A DNA stretch of 64,000 nucleotides from Parasitella parasitica NRRL 2501. Lineage: Eukaryota; Fungi; Mucoromycota. This document shows positions 573 to 19,087 of the stretch, in pieces (within the stretch, counting starts at the first letter, position 1; every line of letters starts with the position of its first letter). Position numbers and translations under genes: made by a program. Location of the stretch: positions 1 to 64,000 of the forward strand of contig MU619296.1 in NCBI GenBank assembly GCA_025201805.1. Direction: 5' to 3'. The notes below the pieces were generated by a model that searched no databases, was not told where the DNA came from, and saw nothing but the letters and a program-made list of their open reading frames with translations.

Positions 573-3500
573 TTGAGAGTGGATGAAAATAAAATTGGCT
601 TTGTCCAATAAAGAATTGAAATACAGTCTGCCATTTGCAGTTTCTGAAAAAAAAAAATTCAAGTAAACGATGAAAGTCATGGTGATTGTGATAATATATA
701 TTAAGGTTTCCGTTAATAAATTTATTTCTGATAAAAGCAAAGAAGTTTCTGGGAGAAGAGAAATGCCTCCGTAAAAAGATTTCAAGTGGGGATTTCCATA
801 TTTAGAGAAAAAGACTAATTGCTTTGTTTTATTCATAGTAAAGATACGAAGAGAATATTTTGTCTTTAAGTTCAAGGTGATCTTTAAAAAAAAGGTTACG
901 GTTGTCTATTGATAAAAATTTGTGATTCTGGGCGTAAATGTGTTTGTTGACTTTAGATCTAAAACCTTTAATTGGATTCAGGATTCAGGAACGGAGAGCA
1001 AGGTTGAAGATAAACACAATTATGTCCTTGGGATTTCATAAATTTATATACAGATAATTTTAATGAATAGGTGTGTTATCACGGTAGCAGATTGTTTCCT
1101 TTTTTCTGGCATTTTCTTATACCTTCAGTTGACCCGGCGTCATTTAGTGCAGAAGGTCTTGTCAGACAAGTACCAAGCTGGATTCTCTATATCCAGATTC
1201 ACAGTAGAACAGCTAGTCAAACCTGTGCCATCTTTTCCATTATATTGGAATGGTTTAAATATGTGTGTCTTTGCAAAGCCAACATAGATTTTAGTCGCCT
1301 GATTTTTTTTTTTTTTTTTTGGCCTGTGCGAACCTCAGAAAAAGACAAAGACTGTAAAAAACAATGTTTAGCAATCTCAAGCACAAAAACAAGAAATAAA
1401 AAGTAAAGCATTAGGCTATAAGGCACCTTTTGATTACATATTTGCGTAGCTTAGAGCAAGTTTTTGTACTTTTTAAGTTGACATCAGATGAAGATAACGA
1501 CTTTTTGACTTTTCTTCGGAAAACTAATTTTCAAAATCGGAGCGTAAGATCGTCAGGCCATGTACAGACATGCAAGTGCTACCATTAGAAAGGTAAGAAG
1601 CACAACATTTAAATAAATTAAATTTCAATTGTTTTTCTCTTGAATTGGTTAAGCTATGGTTTCTCAAAGATAATGCTTTCTTCAAAAAAAAAACACCATT
1701 TTTCTTTGATAGCGGAGATTAAACACATCCAAAATCAGGAAGAAAAGATTCTTTCAAAAACTCCATTTGGACATTTCGAAAACAAAATTACTACTTTGAG
1801 GCGGGATATCATCTTCCGATACTATGCATACCACAGCTGTCCGTCTATGGTAATAGCTGTATTTTTGGGCGCTCTACACGCTGGTATCATTTCATAGTTG
1901 CCGTATGCTTATGGAAGGAATTATGTTAAGAAAACCTCGAAAACAGATTAAGAGGGAAAAGTCAACATTCTGCTTAATCAGAGCCTATTTGCAATCTTTC
2001 AGATCAAGGAATGATCTTTTACGATCATTTTCTTCCAATATATGCTATAGTAAAAAGTTGCATTTTTGAGGTCAAAATCGAGGATAATGCGTAATCAATG
2101 ATTTTGAATGGGTGGATACAAGGAAAAAATCGAAAAAATCCGTCATTTTGCATCGAAAAAAAAATCATGTTCAAATTGCACTAAAATCATATATAATATA
2201 GTCTTTTCCCTTTAGATACTACTTCCGATGTTTTCAGGGCATTGTTGATTATAAAAATCAGTCAAAAAATGGCACACAAAGCTCAAGTTCTTGCATTTAA
2301 GCTGTAAAAAATCTCTATTTGGAGATGATACCTCTATAAAATAAGTATTTTTGATATCACAAGTATACCTTTCTTCATATTTATATGATACAACAGGTGT
2401 GGCTTATTGAATTGGAAGCAGAAGAGGATAATTATTGAATATTTAACTGCAATAAGCCCTTCTTCTTTGTGAATAACTCATAAGTTGCTAATTGCTAGTG
2501 ACAGAGAAGCCCTATTACCATTGTTGCTTATACTAATACTTAATATCAGCTCAATAGTTCCTTTTTTTTGTGATTCTAATGCTAAACATGTAACAATAGA
2601 AAGCAAAATAGAGGTTAGGATTGAGGTTGAGGGTAATTTTACCAACAAAAATTAAGCTTCGTATAAGCTTCTGGTAGATTCAAGGCTCCAGGCACTGTAC
2701 TATAGAGTATCAAATTCTTAATATAGGGGTTAACTCACTATATCAAACACAGTTTTGTACACCAACCCGTCCGTTATAATGAATCCCAACTGTATATTCT
2801 TTTTTGATATTGGATATGCTGACTTACTCATCAGATGTAACATAAAATGATAATGTAAAGTTTTAAATATAGAGATTGCCATTTGCTTGAATATGCTATG
2901 ATTTTTGAAAAGGCATATGATTAAAGGAGGAAACAGAATGAAATAGTCGGTTTAAACTTAGATTCAGGGATAAACTGCCATAGTGTAAATGCATAATTTG
3001 ATGGATACGTGCAACTTAATGCCTTACTAGTATATGCACTTCGATACTTTGATACTTTGATGGCTTTATAATTTAGTTTAAATACCTTTAAATTTATATT
3101 AACTTGTCTAAATATTTGAGCTTACTTAGATGTCCAATATCTCACGGCTATATCTAAAATAATTTATCAACATTTAAACATTATGAAATTCAAACAATTT
3201 TGTATTGTGGCCCGTTGGTGATTGTTCAGTTTCAGGTTCTGAAGTAAATGTCGATAGTGTTGATAAGGAATTTTCAATGTGTTGAAAAATGGAATAATAA
3301 ATAACCCAAATGGTCATTCATTTAAAAAAAAAACTCTTGCTCCTGCACAATGGCTGTTTGATCAAAAATAAAATAATTAGAGCGTCGCAATTTCGCATAT
3401 CATCATAAAATGCTCTTTTCTTGGGCATTTTTAATCTAAAATAGAAATCTAAAAGATGTGATCGTATTTAATACTTCTTGTCCCTACTCGAAACATTCTT

Positions 3501-3612
3501 AGGGAGACATTTCCCTTCTCTCAAAAACTTGTCAGCTTTTATCAGAAATAAAAGGTTTGTCATCGAAATCCTAATATATTATCACAAACACCGTGGCATT
3601 TATCATTTACTT

Positions 3613-3641
3613 NNNNNNNNNNNNNNNNNNNNNNNNNNNNN
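3613..3641. other. Assembly gap (N run)
   Basis: Run of n characters. Confidence 1.
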
Positions 3642-3668
3642 TTTTTCAAAAACCATATAAAGACTGTA

Positions 3669-3770
3669 GTCTGTAAACATCTGAGGTTATCCAAAGTTAA
3701 AATTGAAATCGTCCGGAAAAAAAAAGAGATGGTCCAAAAAAATAATGAAAACGTCCCAATATTACCCCTA
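3669..3770. repeat. Putative DNA-transposon end: GTCC motifs with 21-bp period ending in CCCCTA
   Basis: GTCC at 3711, 3732 and 3753, each followed by A-rich tracts, then ATTACCCCTA. The same layout occurs at 13841-13899. Confidence 0.35.
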
Positions 3771-3918: not shown

Positions 3919-5357
3919 ATGTTGGAATCTATTCCCGGCAAAGTGTTTGTTGTGGGAGTAGTGTTGCTGATATCATTTATCGCTTATTCATCCCAACTAG
4001 TCATATTTCTGCCTGCATATGGTGGGTGGAATTCTTCCAGCCTTGCTACTTTATTGCCTCTGAATCTACTGGTCGCCATGGTGTTTTACAACTATTATCT
4101 CTGCGTAACTACAGATCCTGGAAAGATACCAGTGCATTGGGTAAGATTGGAAATGCGCTTTTTCTGAAAAATGCATTTATCGCTGTTTTGTGATTTCAGG
4201 AACCACCTTCCTCTCTAGTTGTATCAAAAGAAATAACTACAGAAGGCATTACTGGACCAAGGTTTTGTAAGAGCTGCAACGTTTATAAACCACCGAGAAG
4301 CCATCACTGTCGATACTGCGGTCGTTGTGTTTTGAAAATGGACCACCACTGTCCTTGGATAGACAACTGCGTTGGACACGACAATCACGGTCATTTCATG
4401 CGATTCGTTATTTACGCAAACGTTGCTTGTTCCTATGTGATTATTTTATTGATTGGAAGAGTAAGAGCAATTATGGATGCAATTCGACATTTTCAGGTAT
4501 ATATATTTGCACGTTGTATTATCGACCTGCTGATTAAACGAGGAAACCTTCACAGTTTGATGCCGAGCCCGACACAGCTCAAATCGTATTCATGGTCCTA
4601 AATTTTGTATTTGCTTTTATCGTAGTGTTTTGTGTTGGCATTCTCGCTTGCTATCAACTGTACTGCCTGTCGAAAAATCAGACAAATATCGAATCTTGGG
4701 AGAGGGGCAAAGTGGAAGGGCTTGTAAAGAGAGGAAAAATCTTGCCTGTAAGAATAAAAGAAATGCGAGAAATAGCGTCCCAGCTTCCACTGACATAGAG
4801 ACACTCTTTTTGGATAGGTAAATTATCCATTTGACGTTGGGTTCTACAGGAATTTGTGTGAGGTACTCGGTCCAAACCCATTGACATGGCTGTGGCCTCA
4901 ACAGATGCAAGGCGATGGATTGTCCTTCCCCATTACTCCAGAGACAGACCCTCGTGTACCTTATTATTGGCCACCTAGAGATCCAGATGATCTTCGTCCG
5001 TCGATTTTCTCTTCGAAATACAAAAGACGGCAAGAAGCACAGCGATTGCTAGCAGAGGACCCAGATGCAATTTTAGAAGAATCAGATGGCTACTATGATT
5101 CTGGCAGCTTTGTCACAGACAGCGAAGCAGAGTACTCGATCGACGATGAAGAGGAAGGGATGCGACATTTGGTCAACAATCGTTTATATGATTTATCTGG
5201 CTCCTATTTGGACAATACCCCACCAGCAGGTCAGCAGCATAGACGCAATCCTCATGGATTGCAACAATTAGATGATAATTTCGACAGTGATACTGATACG
5301 ATGCCTCTATCTGCATTTGCCTCCAAAAAAAAGAGCCCCTCTTCAAAAGAGGATTAG
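3919..5357 (+). CDS. PFA4: DHHC palmitoyltransferase (multi-exon)
   Basis: Exons encode TM helices, [52 protein letters not shown] and WPPRDP. GT-AG introns, e.g. 4141-4199. Confidence 0.9.
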
Positions 5358-5497
5358 GCTAAAGATCGTCTATTTTATTATAATCCTTCTAAATAAATCA
5401 ATTGCGTAATGTATACTACTCAAATCAACTTGTCGCTTGTAGCCATGTATAAATAAAAAGCGTATATAATTTATATATGTATATATATATAATGCAG

Positions 5498-6154
5498 TTA
5501 TCCAGCCAAGACATCAACCAACACTGTCCAAGCACCAGCGACACCAGCACAGACCGCTGCAGAAATACCTGCCACACGAGGACCAGATGTGCACTTGAAA
5601 ATAGCGCCTGAAATAGCACCAGCAGCCAGACTATTGAAGATATCATGGGAACCTCTTGAATAGTCAATTAGCGAATTGGTACCATTGTAAATCATGGCAA
5701 TCACACCAACGGCGTTACCAACACCGGGGCCTCTGCGTGTTATTGAATTAAGAGTAGTATTTAAACGTACTCTAGAAGCACCAGAGCTCTTTTTAAGGCC
5801 TTCCATCATACCATATGCCCCACCCAAAGTTAAACCTGCCAAATAAGTGGTGCCTGTACCGTAACATAGGTCGTCAGACCAGCCACGAGAAGGTGCAAAC
5901 CCACTAGATGTGCCAACAGGAGCATCCTCTACCTGCAAAAAGTCGAGGCCTTGTAAAGACATGGGTTGAAGTCGACTAGCGTCAAGGGTTATGCTTGACA
6001 TAAAGTCTGGCATCTTTTCATAGCCGCTGTCATCTGTAATGTTGAAGCTGCTTTCTTCAAAAGAATTGGAAGAAGGCGAATATAAATCATCAGCCTCTTG
6101 CTGATGTTGTTGCGCTACAGGTGCAGTGCTTGATCCAAATCCAAAGATTCCCAT
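5498..6154 (-). CDS. TIM23: Mitochondrial inner-membrane translocase subunit Tim23
   Basis: PSRGWSDDLCYGTGTTYLAGLTLGGAYG...RLNTTLNSITRRGP is the Tim23 signature. Confidence 0.95.
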   Translation of the reverse strand: MGIFGFGSSTAPVAQQHQQEADDLYSPSSNSFEESSFNITDDSGYEKMPDFMSSITLDASRLQPMSLQGLDFLQVEDAPVGTSSGFAPSRGWSDDLCYGTGTTYLAGLTLGGAYGMMEGLKKSSGASRVRLNTTLNSITRRGPGVGNAVGVIAMIYNGTNSLIDYSRGSHDIFNSLAAGAISGAIFKCTSGPRVAGISAAVCAGVAGAWTVLVDVLAG

Positions 6155-6247: not shown

Positions 6248-7481
6248 TCTGTAAAACTAAAAATTGAATACCGGACCACCGGCGCAGCCGGCAATGGGGA
6301 GAAACCCCTCCCCCAAGGATCTAAGTCATGAAGTTTTTGACATTTACTTTCTTCTACTATCAATATGCCTCCTGTTGAGACTAGAAATTGCACAAGCTGC
6401 AAAATTGCTCTTCCTGAAACCACTCCGAAAATGTGATTCATGTCGTGTAAATAAAAATTGTTTGCCGAAAAAAACTGTGAATTGAGCAAAGTTTTTTTTC
6501 CAGGAACGTGCCCGAAACTACGCCAGACACAGAGCTGCGTCAAGGCCGACAGCACCAGAGCACCCAGAGCACCCAGAGCACCCAGAGCATCCAGAGCTTT
6601 TGTTTCTGAATTGGCAATAATGCGAATCTCTGATCTGGGGACGACGAATGTTGATTGTGATGGTTGTGGTGCCTTGCATTGGGAAGCAGAAAGAGCTACC
6701 AATCAAACGAGAAACGACAATCGCTTCTATGCTTGCTGTAAAAAAGGAAAGGCTTTATTGCCCTTATTACAAGAACCGCCTGAGCCTTTGAATGGATTGA
6801 TCAACGGAAGTCATCCACGCTCAGCGCATTTCTTGCAGCATATGAGACAGTACAACACTTTGTTTGCGTTTACCTCATTTGGTACTGACGCCACCCCTGA
6901 GCAACTTCAATGAGAGAGACAAGAAGAAATCAGAGGTGGAATCACTCCAGTTCGTGTTCGTCCAAATATACAAGCACGCTCACGAAATTTTGAGAGAGGA
7001 AGAGGAGCGACAAGCCCAAAATGGTATTAACGAGGATGCTCATATCAGGCACAACCCTCAGATGCGAATGGAGCTAATTGTTGGTGAAGACAGACGCACC
7101 CAAAATCTGCCAACTCTCAACGAGATTGCGGCTATTATACCCAACGAATATGCTGACAGGAGTTTCAGAGATAATTTAATTACATATCGAAATAGCTCCT
7201 CCACCAGTGCTCAGGGTCTTTTCAAAAGAATTAATGAAACGCATGCTGCCTATATGCTTCTTCATTGTGTCTTGCTTTTCCCTAGAGGCGAATATCCAGT
7301 AGAGACGGGTGGGGTGGGGGCTTCAAGGGGTATACCTTCCCCCTGACTATTATGTAAACTTCTCCATTATCAAAGCTTGATTGCTTAATCTACTTGATTT
7401 AACTAAATTTTTGTTGTAGTGTAAATTATACCTTCCCGCAGAGCGACGCCGTCATCGAGCGTATCGAGATCAAACGGCTAG
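6248..7481 (+). mobile_element. Internally deleted Helitron (Rep/helicase N-terminal remnant, frameshifted)
   Basis: ORFs 6458-6913 (CDGCGALHWEAER...ACCKKGKALLPLLQEPP...FLQHMRQYNTLFAFTS) and 6864-7346 (NLPTLNEIAAIIP...RINETHAAYMLLHCVLLFPRGE) match the Helitron N-terminal region. The 3' end has a GCCGT...ACGGC inverted repeat running into CTAG (7478-7481) followed by T. TC at 6248 is a possible 5' end. Confidence 0.8.
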
Positions 7482-8280
7482 TAGGCTCTTACAGCAATCA
7501 CGGCCACAGCATCAATAAGTACATCATCAACAACCGCAGCATCTTCAGACGGAACATCAGTAACCACAGCATCAGTAGCCACAGCATCAAAGACCTCATT
7601 ATCAACGACTGAAGCATTAAATATCCAAAATAAAAAATTTAAGGTAAAGAATTCGTGTTTGCAGCTTTATAGCCATTAATAAACATAATTATAGCTCTCT
7701 GCAAAAGACAATGTACATATTGGCAATTTAAGAATAACACTAGGAGAGTTTCTAATTAAATACTATGAAAATTTGTTAATCGAATCACCTAAGGACAAAT
7801 ATTTTTCGTAGTAAATATCATTGAAGACTTGAATCCATGGTATCGCAACAACATATTTATTTTCTTTTAGCCTTTCTCAAAACTTCATCATTGATATCTC
7901 CAACGAATCCCAGAAATCACAGTTGAACTATTTTGGTGTTGAAACGACGACTATCATCAAAGAAAAATATACCAGAAAACTTACTGAATGTGTTAATCAT
8001 AACATTACCGAAATTACAGATTTATTAAAAATAGTAAGTTTATAATAGGGCCAAATTTATATCTGGATTTCTAACTGACCTATTTATATATATGTATAAA
8101 GTAAGTAGATGCCCAAACTTTGATAAAGACTAAAATAAGGCTTGATTTACTCAAACCCGATAATATCCGTACAAGAGTATGTTTGTAGCATAGTTGCGAA
8201 AAAATCGACCAACGGAAAGGGAAATATTCATTAACCACTAAAACTACTCTCTATTCAAATTAAACACAAATAAGAAGTAT
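7482..8280 (+). pseudogene. Degraded, 5'-truncated intron-containing gene fragment with Ser/Thr/Ala-rich repeats
   Basis: Roughly 15-bp periodic ACAGCATCA repeats (7500-7620) read TATASISTSSTTAASS..., followed by GT..AG-bounded coding-like blocks with stops. Confidence 0.35.
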
Positions 8281-8400
8281 GAGCGTCATTTTTACTAGAG
8301 TTTTCTATGTTGGTATGAGGCTAATACAAACTGTAGTCTATATCAAACAATAAACCGATTTTAGCTACCACTATGAAAACGTCTAGCGAAATAATAACTA

Positions 8401-8450
8401 CAGTCATGAATACGATACGGATACGGATATGAATTTACAGCCATGGACAT
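8401..8450 (+). repeat. Inverted copy of the GATACG array motif (candidate outer left end of the nuclease cassette)
   Basis: CAGTCATGAATACGATACGGATACGGAT and CAGCCATGGA resemble the reverse complement of the array's right end (AGCCATGGATACGGGTACG). Confidence 0.6.
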
Positions 8451-9345
8451 GAGGCGTAAACACAAGATCTGATATTTCAGAGTGCATAAAGTTAACACAC
8501 TCTGAGTTATTTATTTGAGGGTAGTATTCTTCGTTGATTTGAAGCGTGTTACTATAAGGAAAATTGATGATTTTGACTAAATCAATTTTCAGGCAAACGC
8601 TTTCTTATATGATAAATATAAAGACTAAACAATTCTACATGCTAAATGTCTGCATAGAAATTATTTATTTAAACTTTCTCTACATAATTTGTTCTGACTT
8701 TTCCTCATAAAATCAAATTTTCTATTTATTGGAACTACACTATACTCTTTATTGTATTTGTAACGTCTACAATTCCCAGGCGTTGGCAAACAATCAAGAC
8801 AAACACTATGCGTATTGCAAAATTTAGCTTTGAAAAACGTTTATTCACATCCGAATTAATTTCACAAGCATGCTTTGCTCGAGGCAATTGAATAGAACAA
8901 CTTGAAAAGTTTAAAACTACAGTAAATAATGAGACTTACATCTTATTTGCAGCTGCTATCTGTCAACATCGGATCAAAAATGGCAAAGCTTATTTGTTAG
9001 CCGTAAAAAATAAAAAATAAATTCGAGTTAGCAAAGAAATAAGGCGTATGTAAATCAACCTTGCATATAAAAATAGGCATGCTAATTTCATCCAATATGC
9101 TTATAAGTGATATTGCATCATGTTGCTTATAAATATAATTGCTTGGACAGAAAAAATCACGTAAAAATGGGAAAGTGCCCTCTAATTTAACACAATTATG
9201 ATAAATGCCGACTATAGATCAACATATTGACTCTTTTCTTAACTTGAACGTCTCCATAACAACTCTTTACAATTTTACCCCTCGCAATATACGCTGATAT
9301 ATTAGTCTTGATAGGAAACACTTTTTTTTGAAACCAGAAATAAAA

Positions 9346-9392
9346 GTCAGTCTTTTTTATAAGGGTACCGATACGGATACGGATACGATACG
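9346..9392 (+). repeat. Inverted copy of the array motif and flank, directly upstream of the nuclease gene
   Basis: GTCAGTCTTTTTT (9346-9358) is the reverse complement of AAAAAAGACTGAC (11884-11896). It is followed by CCGATACGGATACGGATACGATACG. Confidence 0.65.
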
Positions 9393-9422
9393 TTTCTTTA
9401 TTCTTTCTGAATTTCAGGAATA

Positions 9423-10554
9423 ATGTCTGACTATTTCAATATTGAAAATGGTAAGCGAATATACTATAGAGTTGTAAATACTTTCTTATATAACTTTTTT
9501 AGACTATACTAATTGCGCTTTACCATACAACTACAGACCAGGAACTGATCTGATCAGTAAAATGGTTTTAACCGACACTCAAACCATCAACATGCTGATA
9601 AAAGTTCTCGTACCAGAAGTGGCAGAAGACCACTATGCTGCAACACCAACAGAGTTTATAAACAAAAACAAATGTGATGTCCTTTATACTCCTCACGATC
9701 CTTTAAGCGCATTTCCGCCTGTACTTATTGAAGTTCAAAATCAAGTGGATGAAAAATTCTTGGTACGCGCTATTCATTACAGTACACTCATATACGAAAG
9801 ATACAAGAAACGCCCTATATTAGTGATAATCGGAGTCGCAAGTGCCACTGCGCAATTTATGAGCCTGACGGCACCGAATAGCGACTTTCTCTTCGCCAGG
9901 CACATATCATGTATAGGTTGGGCAAAACGATGCCTTGTACTGACATCTTCAACATTAAAAGTAAACGAACACAACACCGATGAAGAATTACACCCTTTAC
10001 AAGCATTAGGTCACTTCATTTGCTCACAATCATTGTCATTGAGTACGTTGGATTATGGAAAAAATGACAAATGGGTGAGATTGCTGTATTCAATTGCACA
10101 CGCCAATCTTGAGCAACTAAGTGGAGAAGAAGATGAAAAGTTGGAAGCAATTAGCAACATATGTACCAGTAGTCAAATTCAACTCCACAAGATAAAAAGG
10201 TGCCTCGAAAATGGAGAAATTGAAAAGGCATTAATCTATACGGACGATACTTTAGGATTCTTACAACGACAAAAAAGAAAATACTGCGAAGCTATAGAAA
10301 CAACACCCATTGAAGAAGCTCCTCCCTTGGTCTATTTAAACAAAAACAGGAAGCTCACAAACTCTGTTGATTTCAATGACGAGAGGAATAAAGCAGAACT
10401 GCACCAATTTGTACAACGATTCAAAAGTATCGAATCAGGAAGAATCAGCTGGAAGAAGTGCTTTGAGCAAGGGCATCTTGATGACATAAAAATAATCAAG
10501 CATTTTAAAACTAGTGAAAGTTTAAGATGCCACTATAACAGATCCTTTAAATGA
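9423..10554 (+). CDS. PD-(D/E)XK nuclease-fold protein (Rpn/PDDEXK_2-like) with C-terminal helical extension
   Basis: Exon 1 at 9423-9450 (MSDYFNIEN) plus a phase-1 intron at 9451-9502 joins in frame to ORF 9562-10554. Motifs are PTEF...KCDVLY...PPVLIEVQ...FLVRAIHY. The C-terminus ISWKKCFEQG...SESLRCHYNR is a possible Myb/HTH-like domain. Confidence 0.7.
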
Positions 10555-10594
10555 AGAAAAAATATTTTATTACTGTCGTTAAAAAGAGTACCAT

Positions 10595-11244
10595 TTAATC
10601 ATTCAAGTCATTATTACATAATATGGCTTTGTCATTGCTTGTAATAGCTATGATAATTTCCAATAAAGGGTGATATTTTAGTTTACTTTTGTTGATCCTA
10701 CTATCCTTCGATGAAACTAATAAACACTGCCTTGCCCAAAATGCACATGGTATTTCTCTTAGGAATGAGAGCTCTTGATGTACCGAGCTTAGTTCAACGT
10801 TGCTCTCATCAAGTTCTTGGGCAACAATAATCACGCAGATAGGGGCAATATTATATAGTTCGAAAACGTTGGTGCATTGTTGGATGATTTGATTAAATTT
10901 TGCGTCGTCAAAAGTCTCAATAGTGTTGATAACTATGGGAGGTAAATTATTTGGAAGATTACACGGAACATATAGGACAGAAAATACATGTTTATGTATA
11001 AACTCTAAAGGCTCAACATAATATGAACCTTTTGATGCTTTAACAAGACTTGCAGTTATATTGTCAAGGATTTGTTCGTCAGTCAAAATGATCTTGCTAA
11101 TCAAGTCAATTCCAGGATAATACTCAGTTGGTACAGCAAAATCATGACAATATTGATCTTCTTCTAAAATATTATTATGGATGTAAGAAAGAGTAAATAT
11201 TAACATTTCTAAACTGTAACAAACTTACCAGTATAATCACACAT
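10595..11244 (-). CDS. Shorter paralog of the adjacent nuclease with catalytic residues replaced
   Basis: Exon 1 ATG at 11244 (MCDYT) plus a phase-1 GT-AG intron. It aligns with the neighbour: YPGIDLISKIILTD/RPGTDLISKMVLTD, PLEF/PTEF, SVLYVP/DVLYTP, PPIVINTI/PPVLIEVQ, CAFWARQCLLVSS/CIGWAKRCLVLTS, HPLL/HPLQ. Confidence 0.7.
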
Positions 11245-11297
11245 TCCTTTCTCACAAAAACACTGTATTACTTTATTGAAAGAAACTGAATATTCTA

Positions 11298-11866
11298 TCC
11301 GTATCCATACGTCGTCATTCGACAACCGGTGTTCTAATTTCTTGTATCGTACCAGTATCGTACCCGTATCGTATCCATAAAAATAACCGTATCATGTATC
11401 CATATCCGTATCGTGACAGTATCGTATCCGTAAAAATAACCGTATCATGTTTCTAAAACCGTATCGTATCCGTATCGTACCAGTATCGCATCCACAAAAA
11501 TAGCCTATCATGTATTTGAATTCGTATCGTACCAGTATCGTACCCGTATCGTATCCATAAAAATAGCCGTATCATGTATTTAAATTCGTATCGTACCAGT
11601 ATCGTATCCGTATCGTATCCATAAAAATAGCCGTATCGTGTCTCTAAATCCGTATCGTATCCGTATCGTATCCGTAAAAACAGCCGTATCGTGTTTCTAA
11701 ATCCGTATCGTATCAGTACCGTATCCGTAGCGTATCCGTAAAAATAGCCGTATCGTGTCTCTAAATCCGTATCGTATCAGTACCGTATCCGTATCGTATC
11801 CGTAAAAATAGCCGTATCGTGTCTCTAAATCCGTATCGTACCAGAATCGTACCCGTATCCATGGCT
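11298..11866. repeat. Higher-order tandem array of about 9 units of 53/64 bp built from an 11-bp CGTATCGTATC subunit
   Basis: AAAAA(T/C)A(A/G)CC anchors at 11379, 11432, 11496, 11559, 11623, 11676, 11740 and 11804 (spacings 53, 64, 63, 64, 53, 64, 64). Confidence 0.95.
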
Positions 11867-11899
11867 TTTGTACATTGTATGAAAAAAAAGACTGACCTT

Positions 11900-12960
11900 A
11901 AATTCAATTCACATCGAGCTGAGCCCTGCTATATTAGTATTTATACGGTGAAATAGGAAATAGTGTGTAATTAGAGATTGTACTGCCGTTAAAGGATGGC
12001 TTCAGTATAGACGATATTTCTCGTGCAATTGGGTAGAATTCGTTGTTGCTTCTCATCTTCAGATTGCTCAAAGAGAACTTTCTAGAGGTAGTAGTTTGAA
12101 CTCTCGAAAGAGCAACATATAATAGGCCATGAGAAAATACAGACTTTAAGAGGTATAAACCATCTTTTGCAAAGTTTGTTCTTGAGTCATGTTTACAGAC
12201 ATTGCAAAGGCAAGCCTAATTGGAAATTGATGTCTTTGGAAGTTGATAGGTGATTCATCAGGAAAATTTAAAGAGATTTTTGGAGTAAGAACCACATCAC
12301 CAATTTTTCGAACCTGAGATTCTTGCAAAAATGGCAATTTGGGTTTTGTATCTGTAATGCTCTTCAAATGGAACTACCTCATGCATCATTTCTTGTAGTC
12401 TTCCCGATGTATTTCTCGAAATATGGCTTGCGTGAGCATGACGATTGTCCAAATCATAATCAGCATCATAAATGAAAATCTGAGAGAATGCTGAACTTTC
12501 TCCAGCCGCAGGTAAATCACTACCCATTAAATGGTACGTACTTCCGTGTAATTTGAAGATATATACACCACCACACCTCGAGTTTCTTGTTCTCTCGAGA
12601 TCCCTTGCTCTCGAGCAGTCTGATTAGTTTTTTTCTCAACTCCCAATGAAGGAAAACTCAATGCACTATTATACGACCTTATACTGTTCCTGAACTTTCT
12701 ACATTCGCTTGTTGAATGCTTTGATTGCTGACATGAGGCACATTTAGTTATACTGACTTGAGGTGTGGGGTTACTTCGCTTTCTCTAACAGATTGAGCGT
12801 ACGCATTTGTATTATCTGTAGGGGTACCACTGTTTTTTTGGATTGTTAGGACATGAATTATGTGATTTTCTCGAATCACCCAATTTACGGCACGAAGCAC
12901 AACGATTGTTTTGCCAGTGGCTAGGGCCTACTATATTTTGAGGAGGGACGCTTTGGCATA
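11900..12960 (-). mobile_element. Second degraded, internally deleted Helitron in opposite orientation
   Basis: Minus-strand fragments: zinc knuckle CASCRKLGDS..HNSCP, IRSYNSALSF, YIFKLHGSTYHLMGS..AFSQIFIYD, then directly the PIF1 helicase C-terminus QFPIRLAFAMSVN..Q.QTL and VFSHGLLYVALSRV. Confidence 0.8.
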
Positions 12961-13379
12961 CTACAAGTTATTATAACACTTGTGTTTTCTAAAAAAATTT
13001 GACCAAACCCTTGGTACCATTATTTAAGATTTATTATAAGGTGTAATTTGAGGAATCTCTTTTGAGGGCAATTGTTATTAACTTTGATTTTTAGTTTAAT
13101 ATATGAACCAACTTTAAATGTTATTATTCATATCAATTGGGATTGTTGGCAAAAATGGGAGAAGGGTACGATAACAGTGGGGAGGGTGGCATTTATACGA
13201 TGGTTGTAGATCGCAATGTTGTACCACATATTGGCTAAATACCACAACTTCAGCAATTCGTAAAAACATCATTATTTTGTTACATAAGATCTTCAGTTTT
13301 TTTATTTTTTGGCGAGTGGGCCGGTAGCACTCAAGTGTGCCGTATTAGCGTAGCCAGTTTTGAAGATATAATGTGAATA

Positions 13380-13810
13380 AAGCCCTCACAAGAGACAAGA
13401 GGGAGAAAAGAGAAAGAAAAGGAAAATTAAAAAGGGCAAAATGTAAAAGAAACAAGAAAGAGAAAAAAAAAAGGAAAAGTAGGAGTAAACAAGAAATCAG
13501 AGGAGCCTCTTTATAATGGATAATTAGAATTCATCACTCTGCATTTGTTGTTGACCTATCAATAAGAGAAGGTATAAACCTTGCTCATGCCCCCTTGCTC
13601 TCCTTTTTTGAATCCATTGAATAGTGCTGATCATAAATAAAGAGCAATATCAAGAGGAACCCACTTGATAAAGAAGATACTCTGACATCTCGCCTTCCTG
13701 CAGCTTGTCAATCAGTTACTGCTCAGGGTTGTCAAGGCTGGTTAAAGCATGCTGAGACGTTATGGGATAGGTGCATTGAGAATGAATTAGGCTTAAGGTT
13801 GATGTTATCC
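13380..13810 (-). mobile_element. Probable degraded retroelement 3' fragment
   Basis: A purine-rich tract on + (pyrimidine-rich UTR-like on -) next to broken coding-like sequence. No clear motif. Confidence 0.25.
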
Positions 13811-13840
13811 CTACATATTATTTTTTACTTTACGTAGTTC

Positions 13841-13899
13841 GTCCTAAATAAAAAATCATTTTGTCCTAAAGTTTATTTCGTTTGTCCCAAAAATCTCTA
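13841..13899. repeat. Putative DNA-transposon end: GTCC motifs with 21-22-bp period ending in TCTCTA
   Basis: GTCC at 13841, 13863 and 13884. Same layout as 3669-3770. Confidence 0.35.
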
Positions 13900-14328
13900 A
13901 AAAAAAGTTTCTCAAATTTATTTAATTAAGACTTAAATCCTGTACAGTGATCCGGTATATTCATGCATACAATACTGATGAATCTAGTCAACGTGCACGT
14001 GTGGAGCTATGTAACTACTGTGTTTTAAAATTCTAGAAATGCCCAAATGTCAGCTTAAAAAGGCAGGTTGAATGTAATTAACGCCTTTTGTTGTCTGGAC
14101 CGGGAGTCGCGGTACATGTAACGGATCTTGTGTAATGTGTAAAAATAATAAAAAATCTGTCAGTTCAGTCAGGAACCCACTGTTTCTAATTGTATTTTTG
14201 TTCTAGCCTTTGATTTTTGCCCAATTACCTCGGAATACAATGATAATTGATATATATATATATAAATATGTAAATATGCATTCAAAAGATTTGTTCTCTT
14301 TTTTTCTTTTGTATATTCATATTCAATC

Positions 14329-15123
14329 ATGAACCGAAAAACAAAGCGCAACTCTCCTCCCCCTCTTCGGACAACAACTGCAGCTATACTAGATCATAAA
14401 TTTACGGACACTGGCTTCGCAGAATGGTCCAAGGTACTTCAACTGATATCACCGCCTAATAAAAAGAGAAGGGCGGTCGCATTGATTGGACAATCTCGCG
14501 AGGACAGCGACGAAGACGATGAAGCAAACGATGGTGAAGACGACGATGAAGACATTGAAGATAATGACCATAAAATTAGACTGAAAAAAGTTCAAGAGCA
14601 AAATGATACTAGCAAGCAGAAGCTGATGAAACGAAGAGCCATGTATATACCAAATCCGCTAGAACAATGCAATGATAGCCCAAGAGATGCATGGCACAAA
14701 TGGACACTCTATCGTGCAACCTGGCAAAAGCTCCGTAGAAATTCATTGCCACTTGCGGAAGTTGTTCATTTAAGACGAATGCTTTTCAATCTACAACGAG
14801 AGAAATCCGTCCACGAGCAGATTAAGCAGCATCAGCAGCAACAACAAAAACTACCAAAAAATCGCACTAAAAACTCACAAAATGATGATGAAGACAATAT
14901 TCCATTAGGCACACTGCTTGAAAACAAAAAATTAGCAACGACTCCCGCCAGGTCATCGTCTTCTCCACCCAACATGATGAAAAGGGCAAAACAGACAAAA
15001 CAGACAAACGCATTTTATCAGCATATTGTAGTTAGCCCCCAATCTGCTGTTTTGAATGTATTTTATCGGCAGCCATGCTATTATTACAATAATACGCAAT
15101 CATTTCCTGTACATTTTATCTAA
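14329..15123 (+). CDS. Hypothetical protein (acidic tract, DDEDNIPLG motif)
   Basis: Intact 264-aa ORF with low-complexity segments. No family recognised. Confidence 0.65.
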   Translation: MNRKTKRNSPPPLRTTTAAILDHKFTDTGFAEWSKVLQLISPPNKKRRAVALIGQSREDSDEDDEANDGEDDDEDIEDNDHKIRLKKVQEQNDTSKQKLMKRRAMYIPNPLEQCNDSPRDAWHKWTLYRATWQKLRRNSLPLAEVVHLRRMLFNLQREKSVHEQIKQHQQQQQKLPKNRTKNSQNDDEDNIPLGTLLENKKLATTPARSSSSPPNMMKRAKQTKQTNAFYQHIVVSPQSAVLNVFYRQPCYYYNNTQSFPVHFI

Positions 15124-15309
15124 TAATAAAATTCATTTGTAAATACATTACAATAGTAATTTAGAGTATCCACCCTCCTTTTATAGCCAATTAACTGGCT
15201 TTTTCGTACTACATACTTTGATAATGGGGATCTTCCTCATATAGATCAATCCACATTTTCATGTAATAGCACTTTTTTATTATTCGTGTCATTGATAATG
15301 AATAATACA

Positions 15310-16635: not shown

Positions 16636-19087
16636 TTATTTCTTTGATAGCAATCCAAATTCAACGTGCAATGTCTCTAACCATGCATCGCGTTCTTGCT
16701 TGCTTCTGGCCTTAAACACCCAACAGGTTCCTCGGTTTCCTAGGCGATGCCCCAGCTTGAACAGTGACAGGTACTCTCGAACATTGGGCACAAACCGTCT
16801 TTTCGCTAATTGCCAGATTACAAAGATGCAGTCAGATGTCTTGTTTCCGCCAGTGATGGTTCCGTCTTTATAGAACCTTGGAGGTTCTACTTTCTCGTAG
16901 TCATATTTGTCTAGAATGCATTCATCTCCAGAATAAACATAGGCATCTTTCAAATGCAACAGTACTCGCTTTTTTTGATACAAAACCATTTCTTTGCGCT
17001 GTTGCATTTGCTCACTATTTTTCGGTTGACGTATGCAATTAAATAATGTGTTGTGGTGAGGGTTCTTTTGAAGCGTGTCAAACATAATCAGTCCATCGTA
17101 ATTCTCGCTCTTGCTCAAGATGCAGTATTGTGTTTGAAATGTTTTTTTGAAATTTTGCTTTACATATAAAAAGCCAGATTGCTGTAATGTATACAGTGTT
17201 ACATGATAGTACACAATAAAAGCTTCACACACTGTCACAAACTTACTAGAATACGCCTGTTTCCATCGTATCCTCGATGATGTCGATATGAGAGCGATGA
17301 GTTCATCCAGAGGTAGTCCACTTTGATCGCATTATTTATCAGGGTTATCCATTGTAACATGATTTGAGTGTTTGGCGCCTCATAGTACAAAATGTTGTTG
17401 CCCATGTGGATTTCAAATGTGTTGGGTGTCGCATGTTGGGTGCCCTTTTGCAACATTGGCTGCACCCGAGTCACTCTATGTAGATCCAAAACTAAGTGCG
17501 CATTGACCAGTTTTGTAGGATCGGGCAAAGCAACCAAGTCTGCTGATGATGTGTACTTGAAATGTGGTGATGATTCACTACCTAACTCATAAATACGTTT
17601 CTTGTTTTCCTTGATTATCGAGAGTCTCCTCTGTTGCAGTAGCAACCCTGAGGTCGCTGAAAACCAGTTGTGATGTTTCTTTTGATCAAATTGCTCTTCC
17701 CGCCGTCTTTGATTTTCTAGGCGTTGTGCTTGTCGTTTATAATAGTAGTAATATAACCCATCAAAGAAAAAGAGATGGTTTCCGTACAATACAACATAGA
17801 AATGAGATCTCCTGCATTTGATCTTTTGTTGGGTGTTGGTTTTAGTCCATGTCTCGTTAATTAATAAGCCGTCAAACGTAATAATCTATCCATATCATGG
17901 TCAATCAAGGCCATCACCTGTCCATTGGCCCAACTTACTCGTTTTTGCAACTTCCATTTTTCCGTTGGTTCTTCTGAAGTATGCAGTTCCAACACATGTC
18001 TCTAATAATTATTCTCGATTGTTTACAAGCAAGGTTCAATTTCAAAATGGCTCATATTTTTTTCTTACTTGTTCTATCAGTTGAGGTCCAATTAGCTCTG
18101 AATTTTCAGCAAGCCATTCAATCTGGTCACCTGAAGTCATTACAGTTGCTTCTCGTTTGGCTGATACATTTGCTGGTCGCCAACAAAGACGGAATTCATA
18201 ATTTTTCCAATCTACATTGCGTAAAAATGCATCTTTTTGTAGTAATTTTCTTATTACTGGCTTAATATCTTCAATACGAATATTGAGGAGGGTATTTTTT
18301 TTCTGTTCAAACATGTAGTCTAGGGGTAGTCGGATCTGTATTGGGGTATCAGTCATAACGTGAATGTCAACAAACGATGGAATTGGGTTTTTACAAGCTG
18401 GTGATGCAGGTAATATATAATATATGGCCATGTACCAATCTTGCGCATCTGATATATTAGCGCTTTGAAAGTGAAATGAAATGATCGATTTGGTTTCGTA
18501 ATGTACAAATTCCAGGTACCAGATACAATCCTGTGCTGAAACTATTGATAGACGCACTCTTTTATAGGGATATGTGTTATCGAGATGAATGACATGTGCA
18601 ATACGTTGTGTATGAAGAAAGGTGGTCTATGATATACACATTTAGTCTCGACGGGTTAAAACACTTTACTACATACTGTCACGTGATATAGTTCGATTTT
18701 GTCTCGCCTCAACACTGCTTTAAACCGTCTCCATCGTAGGCGAGTTTTTCGCAATTGCAATTCACCTGTTGTTGATTTTCGCTTTGCGTACCATTGAGCT
18801 GTCCTTGTGCACAACACAAGGCCCTGTTTAACGACCGAATCGTCTTGGATGGCGTATCTAGGCTCTTCTATAACAGGCATGATGAGATCATCCTTATGAG
18901 TATCAGATGCTTTTGTTGCGGTTGTTGCAGCATCCGTTGGTGATGCTGTGAACGGTGAAAGAAACCCTGATTGCACGGTTTCGCTGGACGAATCGAGAAC
19001 TTTTGAATGAGAGCTAAGCGAATCTATTGAAATGAGTGGTATAACTGTTGAACACTCTTCTAACGTATGAAGAACTTGATCAGGCAT
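16636..19087 (-). CDS. SPO71: Spo71/Mug56-like multi-PH-domain protein (multi-exon)
   Basis: RLRWRRFKAVLRRDKIELY (PH start), FQSANISDAQDWYMAIY, and C-terminal PRFYKDG...CIFVIWQ...WVFKARSKQERDAWLETLHVE typical of the Spo71 family. Confidence 0.7.

Follow-up and report, generated by a model that had tools for sequence, protein, structure and literature searches.

Rpn/YhgA-like proteins have a variant of the catalytic motif, E-x-Q, that is typical of this family. The bacterial Rpn nucleases are toxic and are restrained by a small partner protein, and transposons of the Tn3 family carry toxin-antitoxin pairs. We know of no eukaryotic transposon that is moved by a PD-(D/E)XK enzyme alone. Here we describe a locus from the fungus Parasitella parasitica NRRL 2501 with two convergent genes, one for a PD-(D/E)XK protein (gene 1) and one for a shorter paralog (gene 2), and with tandem arrays of a GATACG motif on both sides of the pair. 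We will call the genes and their arrays the unit. The locus lies within positions 1 to 64,000 of contig MU619296.1 (NCBI GenBank assembly GCA_025201805.1, forward strand). We call this 64-kb stretch the window, and positions are in the window unless another contig is named. A preliminary description of 8401–11896 proposed that the unit was either a DNA element mobilised by the PD-(D/E)XK enzyme, with the inverted motifs as its ends, or a non-autonomous element with a nuclease/inhibitor addiction module.

We are fairly confident that the unit comes from large DNA transposons that form a family with a common architecture, and that the window holds a decayed core of such an element. A little less firmly, we think it probable that ~9321–11942 together with 13297–13893 is the core of a decayed, non-autonomous transposon whose gene pair and arrays have the role that we propose below. 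The left half of an intact element would have a TA, a terminus that is short and conserved, an arm with a gene of the DDE_3 family (Tc1/mariner superfamily), a tandem array, and the long PD-(D/E)XK gene. The right half would have the short dead paralog in convergent orientation, an inverted tandem array, an arm, a terminus, and a TA. Given this architecture and the structure of the copies, the DDE_3 enzyme most likely moves the element, and the nuclease pair with its arrays would be a conserved internal module. The family, from the Mucoromycotina (Mucorales and Umbelopsidales), is apparently undescribed; our literature search turned up no relevant description of such elements.

In Umbelopsis nana, four copies of the long gene (at least 90% identity) lie on four contigs (L056–L059). 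They are part of a repeated block of about 13 kb, which is 97–99.8% identical among copies, has sharp ends, and sits in four different gene contexts. In order, the block has a left arm of 3.45 kb, the left array, the two genes, an inverted array on the right, and a right arm of 3.76 kb. A gene for a DDE_3 transposase with an N-terminal helix-turn-helix lies in the left arm (L056 2243–3274, Pfam E = 1.1e-26). A TA adjoins the element's end at all eight junctions, and the terminal motifs of the two ends are related and imperfectly inverted. We also compared the core (6958–9610) with the arms in L056–L059 and noticed that one of the four copies (L058) has its gene pair in the opposite orientation to both arms, which is what recombination between the kilobase-long inverted arrays would produce.

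In Mycotypha, the module lies between inverted arms (955–3767 and 10843–8019, 95.7% identical), each with a DDE_3 gene. We considered that this might be a composite of two complete Tc1-like elements, but there is no inner terminus next to the DDE_3 genes. A terminus that is related to the right end from U. nana is found at the two outer ends only, which are identical and lie beside TA, so these are single large elements instead of two Tc1-like elements that flank a cargo. Across the Mucoromycotina, the intact elements are 10–13 kb, and their termini start with C(T/A)G and have TA on both sides. (The Mycotypha element, on contig L046, also contains two more small genes without Pfam matches, at 4182–4733 on the minus strand and 5297–5812 on the plus strand, between the left array and the mini-array that precedes gene 1.) The DDE_3 genes are not limited to these genera. 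Three other pairs in Parasitella (contigs C68, C4, and C45) have DDE_3 on both sides, in inverted orientation, and the arms are 98–99.8% identical in C4 and C45. In Mucor flavus, DDE_3 lies 1.2 kb outside the array.

These copies bear on the proposal that the unit is an autonomous DNA element whose PD-(D/E)XK enzyme excises and inserts it, binding the inverted GATACG arrays as foldback- or hAT-like subterminal sites. The arrays do resemble foldback ends, as they are inverted, variable in length, and specific to each lineage. Furthermore, the window has no other intact transposase, and several Parasitella loci have a family gene and an array without DDE_3. However, in all four U. nana copies and in Mycotypha, homology extends 3–3.8 kb past the arrays to the TA-flanked termini, with DDE_3 in the arms, and both Parasitella copies of the unit run past the arrays and have neither a terminal inverted repeat (TIR) nor a target-site duplication (TSD). 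Movement by the PD-(D/E)XK enzyme seems very unlikely to us. Thus the first of the two earlier proposals is supported in that the unit belongs to a family of mobile elements, but not as to what moves it or where it ends: the true ends are flanked by TA and enclose genes of the Tc1/mariner type in the relatives, and the arrays, which had been taken for termini or transposase-binding ends, are internal in intact relatives, with the true ends kilobases further out.

The window's copy of the transposon core is decayed (Table 1). The only DDE_3 match in the window is a C-terminal fragment of 68 amino acids with three stops (13592–13795). As the window's copy has neither a transposase gene of its own nor recognisable termini, it is a remnant or a non-autonomous element. 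The preliminary description had noted that no transposase is encoded inside the unit. This holds for 8401–11896, but the broken DDE_3 fragment lies right outside. The boxes at the two ends of the core match each other in inverted orientation (86% identity over 22 nucleotides, 72% over 29), and the last sequence that is shared with the unit's duplicate on contig C39 falls in the right box (up to 11936). The nested repeat between the right box and the arm remnant is missing from the Helicostylum copy.

Table 1. Features of the unit and its surroundings in the window
Feature	Position	Strand	Remarks
Left segment common to the window and the C39 copy (97%)	8214–9320		blastn of window 8214–9178 and 9218–11338 against C39
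Lone array unit, GATACG x3.5 plus spacer	8401–8450	+	88–90% identical to Helicostylum array units
Conserved box 5' of the proximal motif	9321–9358	+	Inverted copy of 11862–11905; also kept in Helicostylum
Proximal mini-array, GATACG x4.7	9366–9392	+	Tandem Repeats Finder (TRF); ~30 nucleotides 5' of the gene 1 ATG
Gene 1, long paralog, 359 amino acids	9423–10554	+	Intron ~9450–9501
Gene 2, short paralog, open reading frame of 203 amino acids	10595–11206	−	Possible short upstream exon near 11229–11244
Distal array 5' of gene 2	11290–11859	−	TRF 11344–11859, period 64, 8.4 copies
Right box past the distal array	11862–11942		Inverted partner of 9321–9358; conserved in Helicostylum
Nested insertion, unrelated multi-copy repeat	11943–13296		Dozens of genome copies at 76–86%
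Arm remnant with broken DDE_3 C-terminal fragment	13297–13893	+	Adjoins the array box in Helicostylum, 87–94% nucleotide identity

Gene 1 is the long paralog. Its second exon contains an open reading frame (9562–10554, plus strand, 330 amino acids) whose product is 100% identical to the hypothetical protein BD408DRAFT_433503 from P. parasitica in NCBI. (Our searches used either the exon-2 reading frame or the database protein, P0001, as the query.) The first intron is placed by a GT..AG joint (9449|9502) in an RNA-derived contig. The protein has an N-terminal PD-(D/E)XK domain that is Rpn/YhgA-like, a coiled-coil hairpin (~199–271), and a conserved C-terminal helical domain (~300–359). Over residues ~16–207 of the AlphaFold (AF2) model, whose predicted local distance difference test score (pLDDT) is 87, VIA-align found similarity to the nuclease domain of NucS (Z = 8.0, root-mean-square deviation 3.1, 105 residues aligned), to AF1548 (Z = 7.5, 116 aligned), and to McrC (Z = 6.6, 116 aligned). 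The best matches from Foldseek are PD-(D/E)XK enzymes as well, mostly restriction enzymes, and these are weak (E = 0.02–0.5). In an alignment of 32 full-length members of the family, the catalytic-type residues D68, E86, and Q88 lie in a conserved block (SDVLY...PPILIEVQ), where at least 90% of the members keep E86 and Q88, and most keep D68. Across the long paralogs of Parasitella, the E and the Q are present in all and the D in most (three have N). A C-terminal domain of ~50 amino acids is also conserved in the alignment.

We compared these proteins to the Rpn-type families of Pfam (PF04754, Transposase_31, and its clan relatives PF12784 and PF11103). P0001 scores 14.1 bits against Transposase_31, where the cut-off is 21, and 15.7 bits against DUF2887, where the cut-off is 24.1. 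Sub-threshold matches among the 32 members are to DUF2887 (7 members), Transposase_31 (5 members, best E = 1.7e-4), and PDDEXK_2 (1 member), and no match to an Rpn-type family reached the gathering score for any of the 32. Since the threshold for Transposase_31 is not reached, we describe the protein as resembling the Rpn/YhgA-like family but do not file it as a member. Searches of NCBIfam and of PDB sequences with gene 1 or a profile of the family gave nothing useful. Nevertheless, the structural matches, the sub-threshold similarity to Rpn-type families, and the conserved D68/E86/Q88 agree with the fold that had been proposed, and we accept that the N-terminal domain has a PD-(D/E)XK fold with an Rpn-like D...ExQ motif; its nuclease activity is a prediction from the model and the motif.

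The C-terminal domain is modelled as a small helical bundle (pLDDT 86). It had no usable match in the ESM Atlas and no Foldseek match below E = 2.6, and its best score from VIA-align was Z = 5.9. Myb, TRF1, Tbf1, Rap1, and R2-Myb had Z = 4.3–5.2, which is the tool's own noise range.

Gene 2 encodes a catalytically dead paralog of gene 1, as had been proposed. The two products are 29% identical over 146 amino acids (E = 5e-19), both reading frames (9562–10554 on the plus strand and 10595–11206 on the minus strand) are intact and convergent, and the gene 2 protein has the same fold. At the columns of D, E, and Q, it has S, N, and I, and it lacks the C-terminal domain. Across four diverged pairs, the short convergent members have S/N/I, F/T/Q, F/E/Q, and R/N/Q at these columns. 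The catalytic D is gone from all four, the E is also gone from three, and the C-terminal domain is absent from all of them, while the full-length long members retain it. In the tree, the short partners group with each other and never with their own long partners (78/80; 84% of bootstrap trees), which suggests that the pair arose long ago and that its two genes spread together.

We also predicted the structure of a complex of gene 1's N-terminal domain with the gene 2 protein. The ipSAE score is 0.79, versus 0.54 for the best control. (The ipSAE mark is reached by 51 of 78 solved complexes and by 2 of 108 mismatched pairs.) The runs agree on at least 91% of contacts, with a pLDDT of at least 72 for the partner. 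The predicted interface is formed by equivalent helices of the two proteins (93–108 and 145–149 of gene 1, 101–121 and 152–157 of gene 2). So gene 1 and gene 2 are predicted to form a heterodimer, but the prediction may mirror a homodimer mode that is shared by the whole family.

Another explanation is that the module is an addiction cargo. In this case, the long nuclease would be toxic and would be neutralised by the dead paralog in a heterodimer, with the arrays as operators for autoregulation; the module would stabilise the transposon or drive in a coenocytic fungus. The pair is conserved over lineages, the dead partner is under purifying selection (see below), and the predicted heterodimer passes its controls. 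However, toxicity, differential protein stability, and drive are hypothetical here; Rhizopus has the long gene without a partner; and the interface may only reflect how homodimers form in this family. A toxin and antidote would be compatible with our proposal that the unit is part of a transposon, as the two differ only in the role of the module. The window's copy is close in appearance to the other earlier proposal, a non-autonomous element that carries a nuclease and an inhibitor-like partner, with addiction as a putative role. Overall, we think that a toxin-antidote role is rather unlikely.

The array that had been noticed to the right of the genes is readily found by TRF (Table 1), with CGTATC/GTATCG units and an extent of 516–570 bp, and TRF also finds mini-arrays at 9366–9392 and 8410–8429. 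With up to one mismatch, GATACGGATACG has 14 matches in the window, versus 0.07 expected. These are on the plus strand at 8414–8431 and 9370–9387 and on the minus strand throughout 11359–11859, so the motifs to the left of the genes are indeed inverted relative to those on the right. In the 32.8-Mb genome, 12 of the 17 exact occurrences of the 12-mer are in the unit or its duplicate on C39, and the 18-mer is found in the unit and this single duplicate and nowhere else. (We also considered a centromere or telomere repeat, but the motif is restricted to the two loci.)

Each array lies upstream of a gene. On the strand of gene 2, the distal array reads GATACG, so that its polarity matches that of the mini-array relative to gene 1. 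More broadly, a tandem array that contains CG lies no more than 600 bp upstream of 11 of the 20 genes of the family, versus 5 of 89 background tiles, and the polarity of the array unit relative to its own gene is the same in every case.

Other genes of the family have repeat units of their own. Other Parasitella paralogs, which are 25–30% identical, share the architecture: C68 has (GTAGCG)n on the left and the reverse complement on the right; C4 has 36 copies of an 11-mer on the left and 3.9 inverted copies on the right; C153 has a GGTGTC-type unit on both sides; C45 has inverted arrays with different units, (GTATCG)n on the left and (TACCGC)n on the right; and C10 and C150 have single genes with arrays upstream. 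The co-occurrence of the pair with arrays extends to Helicostylum, M. flavus, Mycotypha, and Umbelopsis, as the preliminary description would lead one to expect. Helicostylum has the pair (89% and 85% amino acid identity), the mini-array, and a GATACG array of ~0.8–1.2 kb, with a 6.2-kb insertion between the array and gene 2. M. flavus has the pair and a 1.2-kb array on the gene 1 side, with no array on the other side. Mycotypha (45% amino acid identity) has the pair and arrays of 1.25–1.5 kb with a GGTAC unit. In Rhizopus arrhizus, gene 1 has no partner, and two (GGTAC)3 blocks lie 40–90 bp upstream of it. Overall, the units are specific to lineages: GATACG in the window, GGTAC in Mycotypha and Rhizopus, a GGTACC-based unit in Umbelopsis, and GTAGCG, GACACC, or the 11-mer for other Parasitella paralogs. 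Since orthologs have different units (GATACG versus GGTAC), the array unit changes with the protein lineage.

The family has at least 458 sequence clusters (at 50% identity and E up to 0.001). Our sample includes members from Mucor, Helicostylum, Rhizopus, Mycotypha, Cokeromyces, Lichtheimia, Phycomyces, and Umbelopsis. All 25 of the members that we looked up are named as hypothetical, uncharacterized, predicted, or partial proteins. A six-frame search of the Parasitella genome gave at least 43 matches to gene 1, and many of these contain stops. We also noticed that two short Parasitella contigs, C182 and C225 (L005 and L006), carry another gene of the family, with one TAA stop, in identical copies; perhaps the assembly has duplicated it, or the duplication is very recent.

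Both genes of the window's unit are expressed. In one public run, the stretch is present as contigs, and one of these joins 9279–9449 to 9502–10932 over a GT..AG intron, so it is derived from RNA and confirms our model for gene 1. The contig depth is 774 for gene 1 and 1600–2400 for gene 2. The RNA contig begins at 9279 or further upstream, which places the motif at 9366–9392 within the 5' leader of gene 1. (A minor joint at 10933–10987 on the minus strand, CT..AC on the plus strand, has a depth of 21 versus over 700 and might reflect rare splicing or an error of assembly. It would take 55 nucleotides out of the gene 2 reading frame and shift the frame.) Relative to the orthologs from Helicostylum pulchrum and M. 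flavus, the ratio of nonsynonymous to synonymous divergence (dN/dS) is 0.21–0.29 for gene 1 and 0.31–0.34 for gene 2, so even the "dead" paralog is kept by selection.

Does the unit occur at the same place in relatives of P. parasitica? In a close relative (a Logan contig whose Tim23 protein is 92% identical), the distance from the Tim23 gene to the homolog of 14034–15148 is 2.9 kb, versus 7.85 kb in the window, and the site between these two flanking genes has no family gene and no GATACG. So the unit (from ~9210–9337 to ~13900–13978) was inserted in the window or deleted from the relative. The relative's intergenic DNA has a weak colinear match to 8527–8725 (74 bits, versus at most 37 in shuffled controls). 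This suggests that 8214–9320 is probably, at least in part, native intergenic DNA and not part of the element. We did not find the exact insertion breakpoints, as the intergenic DNA is too diverged and two more colinear blocks are at the level of the shuffled controls.

The duplicate on C39 matches 8214–11936 of the window, with 97% identity for the genic part and 76–84% for the array, and nothing beyond. It runs past the arrays and does not end there. We found neither a TIR nor a TSD where the duplication ends (8214 and 11936). Because 8214–9320 is probably local DNA, the C39 copy looks like a segmental duplication. With closer DDE_3 queries, from M. flavus, Mycotypha, and Parasitella C45, we found no trace of DDE_3 on the unit's left side or near the C39 copy. 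Beyond its right end, C39 has extra pieces of GATACG array in the opposite orientation (182430–182581 and 182904–182980), so its array region is partly palindromic and is longer than the window's.

Horizontal transfer probably brought the unit into Parasitella or carried it out, with a Helicostylum-like lineage as the other party. Between Parasitella and Helicostylum, synonymous divergence (dS) is 0.20–0.23 for both genes, and the non-coding parts of the unit are 86–88% identical. In comparison, dS is 0.49 for actin between the same two species and 0.66–0.75 for Tim23 relative to the nearest relatives that we found, and it is saturated for an arrestin gene between Parasitella and M. flavus. 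It is the low dS of the unit, below those of actin and Tim23, that points to transfer. (We did not use the neighbouring gene in Helicostylum as a calibrator, as its best match in Parasitella is just 41% identical and is probably not the ortholog.) Horizontal transfer is plausible because Parasitella is a fusion parasite that has been used as a laboratory model and as a donor of nuclei (PMC4807231, PMC3734967).

Several observations weigh against our proposal that the unit is the core of a DDE_3 transposon. First, the window's copy has no functional DDE_3; the repeat family of the fragment occurs elsewhere in the genome too, and its link to the unit rests on the same adjacency in Helicostylum. 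The terminal core motif is missing from 1–30000 of the window as well as from the loci in Helicostylum and M. flavus, and no terminus or TSD can be defined for the window's copy. Similarly, the TA flanks of the intact copies are only putative duplications. Second, the 1.1 kb of native-looking flank (from C60) in the C39 duplicate fits segmental duplication better than transposition. Third, nuclease activity, binding of the arrays, and the function of the heterodimer are predictions; DNA binding by the C-terminal domain is unsupported, since its best Z of 5.9 lies in the noise. Also, the monophyly of the short partners could be due to long-branch attraction, and the inference of horizontal transfer uses three calibrator genes only. 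Finally, four Parasitella loci with lone long genes (C10, C150, C136, and C99) have no DDE_3 within 10 kb, and the Rhizopus ortholog is in one context of host genes at all three of the listed loci (with 13 more similar places; 18 R. arrhizus contigs). Thus, some members of the family may have become domesticated as host genes.

The last points, along with expression, purifying selection, and arrays that are always upstream with the same polarity (the proximal one in a 5' leader), are also what one would expect if the window had an ordinary or long-domesticated pair of host genes, whose arrays are promoter or leader elements from an ancient tail-to-tail duplication, with DDE_3 nearby by coincidence. 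Against this, DDE_3 is symmetric and inverted, within arms that are 95–99.8% identical, and all of this forms one block in four U. nana copies. Furthermore, ~96 kb of control DNA had no DDE_3 match. The unit's absence from the orthologous site of the close relative and its anomalously low dS to Helicostylum also weigh against a resident gene pair, as do the many family copies with stops and the lack of flank synteny between genera (the window, C39, Helicostylum, and M. flavus share none past the unit and one transposable element). We conclude that a host gene pair is unlikely.

Returning to the transposon, what might its nuclease pair do? We propose that the long protein recognises its own arrays, possibly via the C-terminal helical domain, and that with the dead paralog it would form a heterodimer that is an attenuated or nicking enzyme. 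Its target would be the element's own inverted arrays, where it might promote recombination (flipping of the core or changes in array length) or autoregulate the two genes. Such array-directed action is a tentative suggestion and may well be wrong. In the window, the arms with the transposase would have been lost, with both genes still intact, expressed, and selected.

More speculatively, these elements might be a new class of eukaryotic DNA transposon, in which the Tc1/mariner-type transposase has a permanent partner: an array-directed PD-(D/E)XK heterodimer, with one active and one dead subunit, that targets the element itself. By nicking or cutting the internal inverted arrays, the heterodimer would drive recombination and so flip the core and maintain the palindromic arms, perhaps with homing or break-induced copying as well. 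Protein and array would co-evolve in their specificities within each lineage, and the elements would pass from one mucoralean species to another, perhaps carried by the fusion parasite Parasitella. We consider this broader scenario somewhat unlikely.

The surroundings of the unit had been described as decayed debris of transposable elements throughout. This was overstated, as there is a gene of the Tim23 family at 5501–6154 (minus strand, Pfam E = 2e-28) and a gene with a PH domain at 16639–17789 and beyond. There are no tRNA genes near the unit. The closest database matches to the Tim23 protein are from Mucor atramentarius (93% amino acid identity) and the Logan assembly (92%). The two annotated Tim23 proteins of Parasitella are just 65–66% identical to it, so 5501–6154 is a second, diverged Tim23 paralog. 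As for the right side of the unit, the nested repeat was inserted exactly between the array box and the arm remnant; other copies of this repeat family are longer, with their pieces spread apart. The arm remnant has a purine-rich insert of 340 bp (13363–13702) that is absent from Helicostylum. RNA contigs span 13067–13450, and one of them stops at 13478 and continues into a poly(A) that is not in the genome, so a product from there is transcribed and polyadenylated.

If the architecture is as we propose, then this would be, to our knowledge, the first family of eukaryotic cut-and-paste transposons with a conserved second nuclease module, made up of a restriction-enzyme-like protein, a dead paralog that selection keeps, and kilobases of cognate arrays with lineage-specific units, and a eukaryotic parallel to the bacterial transposons that combine DDE and PD-(D/E)XK enzymes or that carry toxin-antitoxin pairs. 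It would also be a natural system of co-evolving protein-DNA specificities and a possible source of programmable, array-specific nickases. The Parasitella and Helicostylum copies, which have diverged little, provide a concrete candidate for gene flow that is linked to fusion parasitism. As for annotation, the architecture would account for a large family, of which the 25 looked-up members are all named as hypothetical proteins or the like.

Among known systems, the family most closely resembles parts of several. The heterodimeric restriction or nicking enzymes of the BbvCI/BspD6I type are analogous, in that an active and an inactive paralog with the same fold are predicted to pair via equivalent helices; BbvCI and BspD6I are among the weak fold matches (E = 0.2–0.3), and we intend this as an analogy only. 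Like the Rpn/YhgA-like proteins (Transposase_31, PDDEXK_2, and DUF2887, the bacterial recombination-promoting nucleases), the long proteins have a restriction-endonuclease-like fold and a D...E-x-Q motif with Q for the usual K, and these are the only Pfam families that they match, repeatedly but below threshold. In contrast to the Rpn/YhgA-like proteins, the window's family is eukaryotic (only from Mucoromycotina, as sampled), has a coiled coil and a different C-terminal domain, and is accompanied by dead paralogs and by flanking cognate tandem arrays.

Tn7 also combines a DDE enzyme (TnsB) and a restriction-enzyme-like nuclease (TnsA) in one mobile element. However, TnsA works at the transposon's ends, while the presumed sites for the nuclease here are internal, so we do not favour a TnsA-like role. 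In sequence, nothing beyond the superfamily fold is in common. Foldback (FB) elements and other transposons with arrays of subrepeats also have inverted arrays of short tandem repeats whose lengths are unequal between sides or copies; for this family, the two sides have 27 versus 570 bp in the window, 1.2 kb versus none in M. flavus, and 1.5 versus 1.25 kb in Mycotypha. But in contrast to those of Foldback elements, these arrays are internal instead of terminal, and each is 5' of a gene. Finally, like the Tc1/mariner elements (IS630-Tc1-mariner, DDE_3), the intact relatives encode a DDE_3 protein with an N-terminal helix-turn-helix and have C(T/A)G termini and TA flanks. Whereas Tc1/mariner elements are ~1.3–2.4 kb, members of this family reach 10–13 kb and have kilobase-long arms (which in Mycotypha are inverted duplicates with a transposase gene each), internal inverted tandem arrays, and a conserved core with the PD-(D/E)XK pair.

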